The notes beneath the pieces were generated by a model that was not told the DNA's origin, ran no database searches, and saw only the letters and a program-made list of their open reading frames with translations. Shown here piece by piece: positions 12,492-64,000 of a DNA stretch of 64,000 nucleotides. This stretch comes from Epiperipatus broadwayi (taxonomy: Eukaryota; Animalia; Onychophora): positions 682,001 to 746,000 of the forward strand of contig JAQFVV010000003.1 in NCBI GenBank assembly GCA_028023455.1. Direction: 5' to 3'. How positions within the stretch are numbered: position 1 is the first letter of the stretch; each line of letters opens with the position of its first letter. Made by a program: the position numbers and the translations under genes.

Positions 12492-12533
12492 CCAACTGAT
12501 GAGTGCTGGTTCAGCATGAAATACATATATTGG
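12492..12533 (+). ncRNA. Minimal type I hammerhead ribozyme
   Basis: CCAA-CTGATGA-GTGCTG gtt CAGCAT-GAAA-TACATA-TA-TTGG, with cleavage triplet AUA. Confidence 0.8.
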
Positions 12534-21709: not shown

Positions 21710-22186
21710 GATATTAGTATCTTTCATTTTTTGTAGTAGTCCTTCAAAATGTATTTTCATACAGGGATTTGCAGTGAATATGTCATCCCCAGTAACATCC
21801 CTTATAACAAATAGGTAATATTGATCAATAATTAGTCTAATTTGAATATTATAATAAATAACTTCAATACAGTTTGTAATTTATTAAAAATTACTACTAA
21901 AATATTCACATATACAAAATAAAATAATAAAATAAAATAAAAAGTGAATGAAATACTAAATTCAGAGTTAAGCTTGAGGTACATAAGTTAGTAGTTTAGA
22001 GTCAGTGCAATGTAATATTATTTATCCTATCTTAAATAACTGAAACACAGGCTTGTTATATATCTGTGGCCATATATATGTAATATAGGGTATATGAGCA
22101 CAGAGTTTCACATCACCCACCTCTCTCCACTCTATCTAATAACACTGATACACCTAAACACATATATGCTGAAAAGATAAATAATC

Positions 22187-22230
22187 ACCAATATACGTAT
22201 TTCATGCTAAACCAGCAATCATCAGTTGGT
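22187..22230 (-). ncRNA. Minimal type I hammerhead ribozyme, intact
   Basis: gatagtc TGG ACCAA-CTGATGA-TTGCT ggttt AGCAT-GAAA-TACGTA-TA-TTGGT gattatt. Stem III is the palindrome ATACGTAT and stem I is extended with a TGG bulge. Confidence 0.9.
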
Positions 22231-22682
22231 CCAGACTATCATCTTTACACACATATATAGTATAAGTGCTCAGATATATATTAAGATAGACTATCCTCAT
22301 AGTTTAATGGACAGGCTTCAATCCACTCCACACTCCAACTCTTCAACCGTCCATCCAATTGAAAATCTGATGATGTAATGCTCAAAGGCCACCCTGAGGC
22401 CGAGATTATTGTCACACCCATGTTGACCTAAGGTCAATATGAACCCCACATGTACAGGACATAATACATTTAATACATATGCAAGGATGGGCAGACATCT
22501 CTATAATGTAATAACTGAAACACAGGCTTGTTATATACCTGTGGCTATATATATATATATATATATATAGGGTATATATATAGGGTATATGAGCACAGAC
22601 TTTCATTAAACTATGAGGATAGTCTATCTTAATATATATCTGAGCACTTATACTATATATGTGTGTAAAGATGATAGTCTGG

Positions 22683-22726
22683 ACCAACGGATGATTGCTG
22701 GTTTAGCATGAAATACGTATATTGGT
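22683..22726 (+). ncRNA. Hammerhead copy with a core mutation (CGGATGA)
   Basis: Identical to 23157-23200 except T>G at 22689 (U4), so probably inactive. Confidence 0.8.
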
Positions 22727-23156
22727 GATTATTTATCTTTTCAGCATATATGTGTTTAGGTGTATCAGTGTTATTAGATAGAATGGAGAGAGGTGGGTGG
22801 TGTGAAAGTCTGTGCTCATATACCCTATATTACATATATATCGCCACAGGTATATAACAAGCCTGTGTTTCAGTTATTACATTATAGAGATGTCTGCCCA
22901 TCCTTGCATATGTATTAAATGGATTATGTCCTGTACATGTGGGGTTCATATTGACCTTAGGTCAACATGGGTGTGACAATAATCCGGCCTCAGGGTGGCC
23001 TTTGAGCATTCCATCATCAGATTTTCAATTGGATGGATGGTTGAAGAGTTGGAGTGTGGAGTGGATTGAAGCCTGTCCATTAAACTATGAGGATAGTCTA
23101 TCTTAATATATATCTGAGCACTTATACTATATATGTGTGTAAAGATGATAGTCTGG

Positions 23157-23200
23157 ACCAACTGATGATTGCTGGTTTAGCATGAAATACGTATATTGGT
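23157..23200 (+). ncRNA. Minimal type I hammerhead ribozyme, intact
   Basis: ACCAA-CTGATGA-TTGCTGGTTTAGCAT-GAAA-TACGTA-TA-TTGGT. Confidence 0.9.
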
Positions 23201-23859
23201 GATTATTTATCTTTTCAGCATATATGTGTTTAGGTGTATCAGTGTTATTAGATAGAGTGGAGAGAGGTGGGTGGTGTGAAAGTCTGTGCTCATATACCCT
23301 ATATTATCCTATCTTTATAGGTTTTGAGGGCTCATATTGCTTCAAGCTACTATGACCCTAAATTTAGTAATAGCTTCATCAACTGCCACCTCTCTTTGCA
23401 TTTAATATGCAGCTTTGAAATTTACATTGCAGTAGTGTATAATTGGCCTAAGTTTATATACTGTCAAAGTATTTGCATATTTTTATTATTATTAAAATGC
23501 AGACAAGAAATTATAGAAAAATCTAAATCAGGGCATAATATTTGCAAAATATGCTTATCTTTGTCTCATATTACCTAATTCATATATAGGACCCAAGCCC
23601 ACATCATACCATAAAATGCAGATAATTCACAATATAAATTTACACAATCAAAAGCTATTTTTTTTGATCAGCATATATGTTAGTTTCAATAATAATTTTT
23701 TCATATATTTTTTATCAAATATAAATTCAAATAATAATTTAAAAATACATTCAAATAATAATTAAAAAATATATAAAAATAAATATTTACCATCGGCTCC
23801 CAATAATTTTTATCCCACAAAGCTCATTGGTATAATTTTTTTTTTTTTCCAATGTAATT

Positions 23860-45931: not shown

Positions 45932-45971
45932 CCAACTGATGAGTGCTGGTTTAGCATGAAATGCATCTTGG
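45932..45971 (+). ncRNA. Minimal type I hammerhead ribozyme, intact, related to the 474-bp family
   Basis: gtgacc TGG gCCAA-CTGATGA-GTGCT ggttt AGCAT-GAAA-TGCA-TC-TTGG ggatcac. Stem III is the palindrome ATGCAT and the triplet is AUC. Confidence 0.85.
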
Positions 45972-57266: not shown

Positions 57267-57379
57267 ATAGATAGATAGATAGATAGATAGAAAGAAAAAT
57301 AGGTAGATAGATAGATAGATAGAAAGAAAAATAGGTAGATAGATAGATAGATAGTTAGATAGATAGATAGATAGGTAGG

Positions 57380-57441
<62 letters not shown>
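57267..57441. repeat. (GATA)n microsatellite with interruptions
   Basis: Direct reading. It explains ORF 57224..57472. Confidence 0.95.
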
Positions 57442-57769: not shown

Positions 57770-59150
57770 ATTATACTACAAAAATAGTATTGACTTTATG
57801 GATTTTAGGTAGTCCATATAGGTGAGTAATCTTGCTGAAATGTGAAGTTAATTTCTTTTTTTTTTCCGAATCACTGAAATATCAGTAATGCTTCTGGAGT
57901 AATATTAGTAATTTTACCTATATTGATGATACATTTGTGGTATGGTCACATGGTGAGGTGCAATTGCAGTCATTCTGCTTGCATATCAACAATCTATCTC
58001 CTTCAGTTAAATTCCCAATGGAATCAAAATGAGAATAAAAATTGGCCTTCTTAAATATTGAATTATTCAGGGCAAGGTGAAATCAACAGTCTATTGGAAA
58101 CCAACACACACTGGCAAGTATTTGGCATGTACATACAACCATACCAGAAGCACTAACATGGAATTATATCATCACTATAGAATAGAGAAAAGGAAATTTG
58201 TTTAGAAATCAGTGATTTGGAAAATAAAAAGATTCACATAGAACAAACTATCATGAAGAATGGTTATTCATCAGCAGATATATAAAAAATCATTAATAGA
58301 CAATAAAAATAAACACCAAAGGAAAAAACAAATATTGAAACTGCAGTTTATCCATACATACCAGGAATGGCATACAAATTAAAGAAAGTCTGCAGTTAAT
58401 ATAAAATTAGAATAGCTTTCCATAGCCATACCACACTTCAAGAAAAATTCTTATTTTCACCAATCCTAAACTAGAAATGCTGAAGAACAAAAACTCCATC
58501 TATGAAATACCATGTAAATGTGGGAAGAAGTATATTGGTCAGACCTGTTGCCCTGTTGAACAGTGATTGAAAGAACACAAACTACTGTCTAAAAGAAAAA
58601 AAATCAGTCAGGAGCAAACTATGTATATACTAATGACCATATATTTAATTGAGAAAATACAAAAATATTGGATAAAGAGGAAAAGGTGCAAAGAAAAAAA
58701 TTCAAAGAAGCTGCTCATATGACAATGATATCTAATCCCATTAGTCAATCTAATATGACAATATACACTGTATGAGAAATGTATAATTACTTTTGCCCCT
58801 AAAAAATAATATAAAAATCTTACCAACTCTCATATATAACAGGAAATTTCTACTATATGTTGTTTTTGACAGAATACTTCAGTTGGTTAAAGCATTTGCC
58901 TTAAATTTGATATTCGAGATATAAAGGTGTGACTTCATTCCTATGCTAATACTGTCACTGGTCAAACCAGGAACACTTGAAGAAGAGTGGAGAATAATAC
59001 TATTTGATATATTATGTTATTACAAACCTGTGTTGTCTATTTATGTGAAATTACTAACACATTGTTTATAATTAAAAAGTTTAAATAAAGTTTACATTTT
59101 TCTATACATTCCACATTTACTGATAGATGATGGAAATAATCCAACATATT
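57770..59150 (+). mobile_element. 5'-truncated Penelope-like element: RT plus GIY-YIG (both disrupted) plus tRNA/HHR-type terminal repeat
   Basis: YIDDTFVVWSHG (57919), HINNLSPSVKFPME..LAFL, YWKPTHTGKYL and IYEIPCKCGKKYIGQT (58498-58545). The terminal repeat is 58865-59150. Confidence 0.88.
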
Positions 59151-59592: not shown

Positions 59593-60757
59593 GATGTGAT
59601 ATTTTGGATTATTTCCATCATTTATGAGTGAATGTTGAATGTATAGAAAATTTTAAACTTTATTTAAACTTTTCAAATACAAACAACTTTGTTAGTAATA
59701 ACACACAAATAGACAATACAGGTTAGTAATTACACAATGTTTCAAATAGTATTATTCTCCACTCTTCTTCAGGTGTTGCTGGCCTATATGTACAGTGACA
59801 ATATTTGCTTAGAAGTTAAACTCACACCTTTAGATTCTTGAATATTGAATTTAAGGTGAATGCTCTACCAACTGACTATTCTGTCAAAGGCAACATATAG
59901 TAGAAATTTGATATATTTATATATGAGGGTTGGTTCAAATCCTCTTGAGTCCTTCAATTTTTTTTTAATTCTAATTATCTTTATTTTTATTTTCTTGTAA
60001 GAGCAAGATTAATTAGAGGCTTCCACACATTGTGTATTGCCACACTGGGTTGACTTATAAGATTATTTACCATTGTCATATGAGCAGCTTCCGTGAATTT
60101 TCTTCTATGCATTTTTTCCTCTTTATCCAATATCTTTGTATTTTCCCACTTAAACATATGGTTATTAGTACATACATGATCTGCTATGGTAGACACATCT
60201 GTTTTTGCTTTTTTAACCATTAGTTTGTGCTTCTTCAATCACTGTTCAACAGGCTGACAGGTCTCACCAATGTATTTCCTTCCATATTCACATGGTATTT
60301 CATAGATGCAGGTTTTGTTCTTCAGCATGGAAGCCTCTAATTAATCTTGCTCTTAAGAAAAATTAAAAATAAAGATAATTAGATTTAAAAAAAAATCGAA
60401 GGACTCAGGAAGATTTGAACTAACCCTCATATATAAATATATCAAATTTTTACTATATGTTACCTTTGACAGAATTGCTCAGTTGGTAGAGCATTTGCTT
60501 TAAATTCAATATTCAAGAATCTAAAGGTGTGAGTTCAACTTCTAAGCAAATATTGTCACTGTGCATATAGGCCAGAAGAACCTGAAGAAGAGTGGAGAAT
60601 AACATTACTCAAAATGTGTAATTACTAACCTGTATTGTCTATTTGTGTGTTATTACTAACAAGTTGTTTGTATTTGGAAAGTTTAAATAAAGTTTAAAAT
60701 TTTCTATACTTTCAACATTCATTCATAAATGATGGAAATAGTCCAACATATCACATC
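59593..60757. mobile_element. PLE fold-back insertion: two ~430-bp outward-facing 3' ends around a 302-bp minus-strand GIY-YIG fragment
   Basis: 59593-60025 is the reverse complement of 60328-60757. The spacer reads CIYEIPCEYGRKYIGETCQPVEQ*LKKHK...NHMFKWENTKILDKE on the minus strand. Each arm has a tRNA-like head and a decayed HHR (59732-59776 minus; 60582-60620 plus). Confidence 0.9.
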
Positions 60758-60927
60758 TTATACTTTATCATCATTACAAACCTTCAGACAAATATTGGAT
60801 ATGACTTTTTACAAAAAACAGAATACATGGTTTCATTACTTTTACTATTTTAAACATTAAATATGAAAATCTCATGATATATAAATTAAAATAAGTTGAT
60901 GACTAACAACATATAATTTCATCATCA

Positions 60928-61087
60928 AAGTATAACTGGTTACACAATGTTAGCCCATCATAGGCCAAACTAAATTCAAAAATATAGTACATAAATATTA
61001 TACCATGAAGTATAACTGGTTACACAATGTTAGGTCATCATAGGCCAAACTAAATTCAAAAATATAGTACATAAATATTATACCATG
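60928..61087. repeat. 80-bp tandem duplication
   Basis: AAGTATAACTGGTTACAC...TACCATG at 60928 and 61008 with 2 differences. Confidence 0.9.
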
Positions 61088-61261
61088 TAGTAATGATGGA
61101 GATTATTACATAGGCAGTACCCATGAAGTGTCCAGTTTTTTCATCCCATTACATTGTTTATTTTGGTTTTTCTTTATATGTAATAAAGAATATTCTACCA
61201 TTCCAAGTATATATGTATAAAAATATAAAATTATACTATTACAAATATATATATATATATA

Positions 61262-64000
61262 TATGTCCACAGATGGCGTCCTACCAAGACTGCCAATCAA
61301 GCGTATGTTTTGTTTACATAAACGTCAGAGTAGTTAGTATTCACTATCTCTAACTATAATTCCACTTTCAGATCATGATTTCAAGCTATTTGCTATCGTC
61401 AGTGAAAGACAGGAATAAAGAAACTAGATCTGAATACAAACTCTGAGCGTCTATGAAACAATTTCTATTCAGCTTGCAAGCGTGAATTTTTTAGACACGT
61501 AATGTCTTCAAACTCAGCATAGCAAACCAGATAGCTACATGGGTCTGATCTCAGTTCAGCATCACCACATAGTAGAAGCCTCTGCAATCTATATCATTGC
61601 AAGAAAGACCTCAAAGGTACATTTATGATAAACAAAAATGCAAGTTAAAAAACTTGCTAACGCTTGTATTTATGTCCACAGATGGCGTCCTACCAAGACT
61701 GCCAATCAAGCGTATGTTTTGTTTACATAAACGTCAGAGTAGTTAGTATTCACTATCTCTAACTATAATTCCACTTTCAGATCATGATTTCAAGCTATTT
61801 GCTATCGTCAGTGAAAGACAGGAATAAAGAAACTAGATCTGAATACAAACTCTGAGCGTCTATGAAACAATTTCTATTCAGCTTGCAAGCGTGAATTTTT
61901 TAGACACGTAATGTCTTCAAACTCAGCATAGCAAACCAGATAGCTACATGGGTCTGATCTCAGTTCAGCATCACCACATAGTAGAAGCCTCTGCAATCTA
62001 TATCATTGCAAGAAAGACCTCAAAGGTACATTTATGATAAACAAAAATGCAAGTTAAAAAACTTGCTAACGCTTGTATTTATGTCCACAGATGGCATCCT
62101 ACCAAGACTGCCAATCAAGCGTATGTTTTGTTTACATAAACGTCAGAGTAGTTAGTATTCACTATCTCTAACTATAATTCCACTTTCAGATCATGATTTC
62201 AAGCTATTTGCTATCGTCAGTGAAAGACAGGAATAAAGAAACTAGATCTGAATACAAACTCTGAGCGTCTCTGAAACAATTTCTATTCAGCTTGCAAGCG
62301 TGAATTTTTTAGACACGTAATGTCTTCAAACTCAGCATAGCAAACCAGATAGCTACATGGGTCTGATCTCAGTTCAGCATCACCACATAGTAGAAGCCTC
62401 TGCAATCTATATCATTGCAAGAAAGACCTCAAAGGTACATTTATGATAAACAAAAATGCAAGTTAAAAAACTTGCTAACGCTTGTATTTATGTCCACAGA
62501 TGGCGTCCTACCAAGACTGCCAATCAAGCGTATGTTTTGTTTACATAAACGTCAGAGTAGTTAGTATTCACTATCTCTAACTATAATTCCACTTTCAGAT
62601 CATGATTTCAAGCTATTTGCTATCGTCAGTGAAAGACAGGAATAAAGAAACTAGATCTGAATACAAACTCTGAGCGTCTATGAAACAATTTCTATTCAGC
62701 TTGCAAGCGTGAATTTTTTAGACACGTAATGTCTTCAAACTCAGCATAGCAAACCAGATAGCTACATGGGTCTGATCTCAGTTCAGCATCACCACATAGT
62801 AGAAGCCTCTGCAATCTATATCATTGCAAGAAAGACCTCAAAGGTACATTTATGATAAACAAAAATGCAAGTTAAAAAACTTGCTAACGCTTGTATTTAT
62901 GTCCACAGATGGCGTCCTACCAAGACTGCCAATCAAGCGTATGTTTTGTTTACATAAACGTCAGAGTAGTTAGTATTCACTATCTCTAACTATAATTCCA
63001 CTTTCAGATCATGATTTCAAGCTATTTGCTATCGTCAGTGAAAGACAGGAATAAAGAAACTAGATCTGAATACAAACTCTGAGCGTCTATGAAACAATTT
63101 CTATTCAGCTTGCAAGCGTGAATTTTTTAGACACGTAATGTCTTCAAACTCAGCATAGCAAACCAGATAGCTACATGGGTCTGATCTCAGTTCAGCATCA
63201 CCACATAGTAGAAGCCTCTGCAATCTATATCATTGCAAGAAAGACCTCAAAGGTACATTTATGATAAACAAAAATGCAAGTTAAAAAACTTGCTAACGCT
63301 TGTATTTATGTCCACAGATGGCGTCCTACCAAGACTGCCAATCAAGCGTATGTTTTGTTTACATAAACGTCAGAGTAGTTAGTATTCACTATCTCTAACT
63401 ATAATTCCACTTTCAGATCATGATTTCAAGCTATTTGCTATCGTCAGTGAAAGACAGGAATAAAGAAACTAGATCTGAATACAAACTCTGAGCGTCTATG
63501 AAACAATTTCTATTCAGCTTGCAAGCGTGAATTTTTTAGACACGTAATGTCTTCAAACTCAGCATAGCAAACCAGATAGCTACATGGGTCTGATCTCAGT
63601 TCAGCATCACCACATAGTAGAAGCCTCTGCAATCTATATCATTGCAAGAAAGACCTCAAAGGTACATTTATGATAAACAAAAATGCAAGTTAAAAAACTT
63701 GCTAACGCTTGTATTTATGTCCACAGATGGCGTCCTACCAAGACTGCCAATCAAGCATATGTTTTGTTTACATAAACGTCAGAGTAGTTAGTATTCACTA
63801 TCTCTAACTATAATTCCACTTTCAGATCATGATTTCAAGCTATTTGCTATCGTCAGTGAAAGACAGGAATAAAGAAACTAGATCTGAATACAAACTCTGA
63901 GCGTCTATGAAACAATTTCTATTCAGCTTGCAAGCGTGAATTTTTTAGACACGTAATGTCTTCAAACTCAGCATAGCAAACCAGATAGCTACATGGGTCT
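61262..64000 (-). repeat. 409-bp hammerhead-containing tandem array (retrozyme-like satellite), 6.7 copies, runs off the window
   Basis: Units start at 61263, 61672, 62081, 62490, 62899, 63308 and 63717. Only 3 substitutions were seen (62096, 62271, 63757). The array begins in (TA)n and has no ORF. Confidence 0.95.
61365..61408 (-). ncRNA. Intact minimal type I hammerhead ribozyme; identical copies at 61774-61817, 62183-62226, 62592-62635, 63001-63044, 63410-63453 and 63819-63862
   Basis: attcc tgt CTTTCA-CTGACGA-TAGC aaata GCTT-GAAA-TCATGA-TC-TGAAAG t ggaat. Stem I is a perfect 6 bp plus an extension, stem III is the palindrome ATCATGAT, and the triplet is AUC (cut between 61371 and 61370). 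Confidence 0.92.

Follow-up and report, generated by a model that had tools for sequence, protein, structure and literature searches.

What writes a run of near-identical, ribozyme-bearing repeats into a single place in an animal genome? The question is raised by the end of a 64,000-nucleotide stretch of DNA from the onychophoran Epiperipatus broadwayi (contig JAQFVV010000003.1, here G000:C3:682001-746000; hereafter the window), which comes from an AT-rich assembly of 5.6 Gb. The initial annotation of this locus proposed a retrozyme-type satellite written by the reverse transcriptase (RT) of a Penelope-like element (PLE). Tandem Repeats Finder places a repeat of period 409 at window positions 61258-64000, with 6.7 copies, 99% matches and 0% indels. 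The unit is low in GC (36%), and an ORF check per unit revealed no sizeable ORF (the longest has 49 aa and a TTG start). The near-identical, ORF-less units of the earlier description are therefore real. The repeat is short and lacks an ORF, LTR, PBS and PPT throughout its 6.7 copies in the window and the 15 copies of the whole insertion described below. No tRNA-like head was found by ARAGORN over 60500-64000. Two other repeats stand nearby in the window, an (ATAG)44 microsatellite at 57267-57441 and an 80-bp repeat at 60928-61092 (2.1 copies, 96% identity). The features of the array are:

61245..61261, no strand: (TA)n tract that adjoins the short insertion end and represents either the microsatellite targeted or a target-site duplication (TSD) inside it; read directly
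61262..64000, minus strand: minus-strand arm, of whose 13.5 units 6.7 lie in the window; the short 3' end is at 61262 (...GGACATA, unit position 103); evidenced by the short-end junction word at C3:743258-743277 and the long-end junction word at C3:749407-749428
61365..61408, minus strand: hammerhead motif of unit 1, minimal type I, predicted cut between 61371 and 61370
61774..61817, minus strand: hammerhead motif of unit 2, motif match
62183..62226, minus strand: hammerhead motif of unit 3, motif match
62592..62635, minus strand: hammerhead motif of unit 4, motif match
63001..63044, minus strand: hammerhead motif of unit 5, motif match
63410..63453, minus strand: hammerhead motif of unit 6, motif match
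63819..63862, minus strand: hammerhead motif of unit 7, motif match
61624..61670, minus strand: 'tail' segment of 47 nt (unit 104-150), bounded by the two end points of the insertions; it recurs every 409 bp, at 62033-62079, 62442-62488 and onward

The hammerhead ribozyme (HHR) motifs are seven identical 44-nt sequences on the minus strand, the first at 61408-61365 and the others at intervals of 409 bp. Each reads stem I CUUUCA, CUGACGA, the stem II hairpin, GAAA, stem III, C17 and stem I UGAAAG. The conserved core is complete (CUGACGA, GAAA, A15.1-U16.1 and C17), there is one HHR per unit, and the motif is of type I because stem I is the open helix. The stem II hairpin, AGC-AAAUA-GCU, has 3 bp above a U.U at its base. 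Stem III is palindromic, (A)UCAUGAU, and its segment AUCAUGAU is an 8-nt palindrome that is unable to close on itself. The ribozyme of the 409-bp unit is a minimal variant without a stable helix III. Two motifs are predicted to cofold through an 8-bp intermolecular stem III at -15.2 kcal/mol, as against -5.1 kcal/mol for a single motif. The whole monomer RNA has a predicted minimum free energy of -122.3 kcal/mol (z = -5.84; 0/100 shuffles as stable), and stem I closes the molecule in this predicted fold.

A generic HHR motif scan over both strands of the window returned 11 matches, all within two repeat families, and the same scan returned 0 matches in each of 40 Markov shuffles. The complete minimal type I HHR that had been assigned to the minus strand of each unit is borne out by these counts, and the predicted cut derived from the motif falls at the position given earlier (61371/61370). 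The initial annotation had also suggested an Rfam scan, and here the outcome was negative: no hammerhead family matched at the gathering score or at E<=10, and the sole match was mir-3149 in the TA tract, a chance hit. Since none of the 11 window motifs was detected, the Rfam models appear to be blind to the helix-III-less type. In the helices of the predicted monomer fold, substitutions between subfamilies are mostly G-C/G-U or A-U/G-U exchanges, a pattern of low statistical power. The only subfamily change inside the hammerhead lies at N7, a free core position (CUGACGA to CUGAUGA), and the N7 variant was again the sole HHR variant seen in four sequencing runs. The inactivating changes G5A and G8A occur as private mutations only.

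The array does not end with the window but runs on for 3.4 kb, and the whole is a single insertion of 6,163 bp (C3:743262-749424). Its 13.5-unit minus-strand arm reaches C3:748761; from there an inverted plus-strand arm of 1.6 units leads on to C3:749424. Both outer ends adjoin (TA)n, and 10 of the 14 units are identical. An empty or allelic site for this locus was not found in the assembly because the right flank is unique there, and a TSD is therefore inseparable from the TA tracts at this locus. Of the earlier 'retrozyme-type satellite', the non-coding hammerhead tandem element of retrozyme type thus stands, but the satellite does not: the stretch in the window is one arm of a discrete 6.2-kb head-to-head insertion.

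How general is this architecture? Thirteen insertions at 12 loci were read. All 13 consist of two inverted arms placed head-to-head, and in all 13 tandem copies stand next to an inverted 5'-truncated copy. The junction at the centre may fall anywhere in the unit, with microhomology or overlap of 0-12 nt. On the outside, the arms stop at two fixed points of the unit, ~103 (...GGACATA) and ~150 (...AUCAUA), and each insertion has one end of either kind. The 47 nt between these end points form a one-sided 'tail', at whose centre lies a hairpin, GCAAGUU-UUUU-AACUUGC (61640-61657 in the first full unit). Reverse transcription would start at the two bounds of the tail, which both end in CAUA, flank the hairpin and follow the HHR cut by 109 and 156 nt. 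The arms pass uninterrupted through the HHR sites, and their ends never coincide with the cut. All 12 young insertions (12/13 read) have (TA)4 or longer on both sides, and the thirteenth (L019), an older copy outside a TA run, carries a duplication of AATACATA.

Insertions of this kind have been described for PLEs. Their hallmarks are partial tandems next to which stands an inverted copy truncated at its 5' end, a tail of 30-40 bp on a single side and a bias towards (TA)n (Craig et al., 2021; PMC8557442). A purified PLE protein was shown in vitro to nick and extend both strands of an AT-rich target. It begins reverse transcription at two positions inside the RNA, both in a stem-loop that follows the hammerhead, and the stretch separating these positions makes up the tail; hammerhead cleavage was dispensable in vitro (Frangieh et al., 2024; PMC11167929). 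The inverted arms, one-sided tail, two fixed start sites, (TA)n target and TSD where readable form the signature specific to PLE integration and support the PLE-type writing that had been proposed for the array.

Some further observations were made while reading these insertions. The tail hairpin is repeatedly 'flipped' in single units of otherwise identical arrays (L013:5084-5109, which lies just beyond the window end, L021:2718-2745 and a unit at L016:4020-4428). Its loop reads AAAA instead of TTTT, and two of the cases also have one flank exchanged for the complement of its partner. They represent independent events at the presumed RT start stem-loop, possibly through strand switching at the hairpin. 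At the right flank of L017 and the left flank of L021, insertions of the 409 family directly abut the end of a 474-type hammerhead element, and older insertions may, through their AT-rich ends, become targets again.

The same structure recurs across the genome. Exact matches number 14,305 for a 38-nt hammerhead word, 12,469 for a tail stem-loop word, 11,382 and 6,516 for words at unit positions 255-292 and 200-237, 1,954 for the short-end junction word and 3,164 for the long-end junction word; the reversed control gave 0 in every case. The 409 family therefore comprises at least 14,305 exact HHR copies and thousands of complete insertions. For the copy number, ends and TSDs that had been named as a genome-wide check of the array, the outcome is 14,305 HHR words, fixed ends and the AATACATA duplication in L019. 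The excess of intact HHR words over other 38-mers was considered as proof of selection and dropped; arm geometry alone favours the HHR word and largely explains the excess.

The pairing of ends was determined on contigs C1-C15 among the matches listed (the first 100 genome-wide per junction word). Among these, 46 pairs combine a short with a long end, 1 combines two long ends and 0 combine two short ends (binomial p = 7e-13), always in the orientation (-,+), so that the left end is on the minus strand and the right end on the plus strand. Insertion sizes, again among the matches listed, range continuously from 65 bp to >6 kb. Many insertions are shorter than one unit, a length that 5'-truncated reverse transcripts should produce but a satellite should not. 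The 65-bp 'insertion' (G000:C1:8545180-8545243) consists of a long end and a short end placed back to back, and is the minimal product of two-site priming.

The units of an insertion also share a history. Divergence is 0.2-0.9% within young arrays versus 1.6-3.5% between arrays, and the two arms of one insertion are as similar to each other as the units within one arm. Array-specific variants occur in every unit of both arms, namely 284A>G in L015, 9 sites in L018 and ~14 in L019. Private differences in the arrays are mostly CpG transitions. In L019, variants at positions 34, 70 and 160 are present in some units only, a hint of a heterogeneous template or of template switching.

Which PLE could be involved? 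The initial annotation pointed to PLE relics upstream of the array. Such pieces are indeed present: an RT with a YIDD motif and a GIY-YIG domain at 57889-58719 (plus strand), and the C-terminus of a PLE endonuclease at 59990-60238 (minus strand) that belongs to a family termed here PLE-809. Both are decayed. At 60615-60676, a 31-bp duplicated stretch resembles the pseudo-LTR of the same family. The relics are real but are bystanders of the array, because their family has no similarity to the 409-bp unit and a different start-site geometry.

The PLE-809 family is nevertheless informative. It has 51,276 first-look candidates, and many copies carry an intact 809-aa RT/GIY-YIG ORF; judged from these sequences, it is apparently an active autonomous family (L055-L058, e.g. 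G000:C6336:2211001-2221000). Its tandem unit of 2,813 bp contains a minimal hammerhead with the palindrome AACGUU and an extra A after CUGAAGA. Complete insertions have head-to-head arms with a junction overlap of 3-5 nt, ends at ~182 and ~216 and a 34-nt tail, and a TSD is present where it can be read (CAATGTT in L057). The start sites lie 145 and 179 nt from the hammerhead cut, and there is no (TA)n preference. Comparison of the 409-bp unit with the 2,813-bp unit gave no significant similarity, and comparison with 34 PLE loci gave none except in the window's own neighbourhood. Since PLE-809 shares no sequence with the 409 family, differs in geometry and does not insert into (TA)n, it serves as a model of the mechanism and not as an identified partner.

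Are the 409-bp units themselves a piece of an autonomous PLE? They could be the pseudo-LTR part of such a family, left as an ORF-deleted tandem whose coding copies lie elsewhere. PLE tandems do form pseudo-LTRs (PMC8557442), a preprint derives animal retrozymes from pseudo-LTRs (10.64898/2026.07.22.740005), and the hammerhead is the minimal helix-III-less PLE type and not the canonical retrozyme type, as these are distinguished in a review (PMC7761336). This origin is nonetheless unlikely. Among the matches listed, HHR spacings are ~399-409 bp or multiples thereof and none is ORF-sized. None of the 13 insertions read and none of 30 PLE loci links the 409-bp unit to an ORF, and an autonomous PLE sharing sequence with the unit was not found among PLE-809 and the 34 PLE loci compared.

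The end-pairing statistics already contradict an ordinary satellite in which a passenger hammerhead-like motif was amplified by unequal crossing-over or replication slippage. Such a satellite would be tandem, near-identical and ORF-less, as the array is, and would fit the lack of an Rfam hammerhead match. It would not have thousands of dispersed loci with the same two sharp ends and inverted arms, sizes continuous from 65 bp upward, array-specific variants common to both arms, a TSD that can be seen at a target outside TA runs, and a motif with 0 chance matches in 40 shuffles, so that this explanation is highly improbable. A DNA-level foldback or hairpin transposon, or a replication-error palindrome, would look alike in its inverted arms and central microhomology junction, but is the least credible explanation of all given that the arm lengths are unequal and uncorrelated (13.5 versus 1.6 units in the C3 insertion), both 3' ends point outward, the ends are asymmetric with one tail, and an RT-encoding PLE of the same genome has the same plan, matching the in vitro PLE biochemistry (PMC11167929).

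The stretch in the window is thus very probably one arm of a single insertion of a non-coding, retrozyme-like HHR element that is mobilised by a PLE. The element is non-autonomous because the unit has no ORF and so lacks the RT and GIY-YIG of an autonomous PLE. The architecture of its insertions, their regularity, their copy number and the plan shared with an autonomous PLE of the same genome are observed; for the enzyme, the order of steps, the activity of the hammerhead and the form of the template, we infer the following. A PLE RT-endonuclease would bind RNA of 409-nt units, whether still a multimeric transcript or already circularised following HHR cleavage. The PLE protein would nick both strands of an AT-rich target, here (TA)n, and each 3'-OH would prime reverse transcription at one of the two internal RNA sites around the hairpin. 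Both cDNAs would extend through many units and would be joined by microhomology in the middle of the insertion. The product would have two inverted multimer arms, fixed outer ends, a 47-nt tail on one side and a variable centre.

What form does the template take? Because the arms run through the HHR sites, the RNA that was copied would have been multimeric and uncleaved, religated into a circle, or made up of monomers between which the RT jumped. Slightly better than an even chance goes to linear multimers or template jumping, and the heterogeneity of L019 and the in vitro PLE data fit linear multimers. A circular RNA copied by rolling circle has a chance a little short of even; the long homogeneous young arms and the continuous sizes fit an endless circular template. 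The four sequencing runs contain the 409-bp repeat as contigs of unknown library type, with a flank depth of zero and a unit depth compatible with DNA alone in a family of at least 14,000 copies. One contig from run X3 (ATATATATA) has (TA)n joined exactly at the long-end position 61624. These contigs were rejected as evidence of expression because the library type is unknown and the depth is within reach of DNA alone.

A second hammerhead family with a unit of 474 bp is present in the same window. One copy is inserted head-to-head at 22034-23303 between 12-bp TSDs (TTATCCTATCTT, at 22022-33 and 23304-15), and solitary 474-type hammerhead motifs lie at 12492-12533 and 45932-45971, both on the plus strand. 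The family has the core CUGAUGA, the palindrome AUACGUAU and a 49-nt one-sided tail that holds a hairpin. The HHR cut is 108 and 157 nt away from the two ends, versus 109 and 156 nt in the 409 family. An alignment of the cut-to-tail modules of the two families was not significant (z = 0.7 global, 1.6 local). A tentative and rather doubtful reading is that PLE integration is an obligately asymmetric, concerted priming of two strands. Of the two DNA strands of each insertion, one would begin at the short site and its counterpart at the long site (46:1:0), with one template lineage for both arms. On this reading, the nearly equal site-to-cut distances in the two unrelated families suggest that the HHR and stem-loop module is a molecular ruler and dock for a dimeric RT-endonuclease, and the ribozyme fold might be as important for recognition as for cleavage.

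How does the 409 family compare with known systems? In the twin priming of L1, reportedly described by Ostertag and Kazazian in 2001, both target strands are said to prime cDNA and the resulting inverted segments to be joined by microhomology. Twin priming in L1 is occasional and its second site arbitrary, whereas two-strand priming appears to be the rule in the 409 family and both start sites are fixed.

Cervera and de la Pena (2020; PMC7229834) defined the metazoan non-LTR retrozymes together with their circular RNAs. PLEs are the likely mobilisers of these retrozymes, and helix-III-less hammerheads have been assigned to PLEs, according to a review (PMC7761336). The 409 family resembles non-LTR retrozymes in its non-coding tandem units, whose length falls within the published 150-450 bp, in its single type I HHR per unit, low GC and highly self-paired predicted monomer RNA, and in the co-occurrence in the genome of PLEs, the proposed mobilisers. 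Axolotl HHR_Amex2 likewise has a U.U at its stem II base. Unlike in classical retrozymes, the ribozyme is the minimal dimer-type variant with a palindromic stem III, which the literature assigns to PLEs. Text searches of PMC7229834 and PMC7761336 gave no match for inverted arms, fixed ends or a tail, nor, in PMC7229834, for a head-to-head arrangement.

Shared with PLE insertions are copies in full or partial tandem next to an inverted one that is 5'-truncated, a tail on one side, an AT-rich or (TA)n target, two start sites around a stem-loop and a minimal hammerhead (PMC8557442; PMC11167929). Unlike PLE insertions, the 409 element has no RT-endonuclease ORF, its arms reach 13.5 units and its tail measures 47 nt versus the 30-40 published. 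Its start sites are at 109 and 156 nt, counted from the cut, versus ~85-92 nt for the first site in PAc (PMC11167929). A 2026 preprint concludes that animal retrozymes are non-autonomous PLE sequences (Li, Clavereau and Pollet; 10.64898/2026.07.22.740005). In that preprint, where a text search for a tail or head-to-head arrangement gave no match, the argument is made from co-distribution and pseudo-LTR phylogeny in vertebrates, whereas here it is made from the insertion signature.

The 409 family is thus a very abundant instance of a published kind of element. The link between retrozymes and PLEs had already been proposed, and what is added here is structural confirmation: a small, very young, high-copy non-coding element shows the full PLE insertion signature and quantifies the rule of one tail per insertion. 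How do PLEs integrate, and are circular RNAs their template? For both questions, the 409 family offers a natural data set and a minimal substrate.
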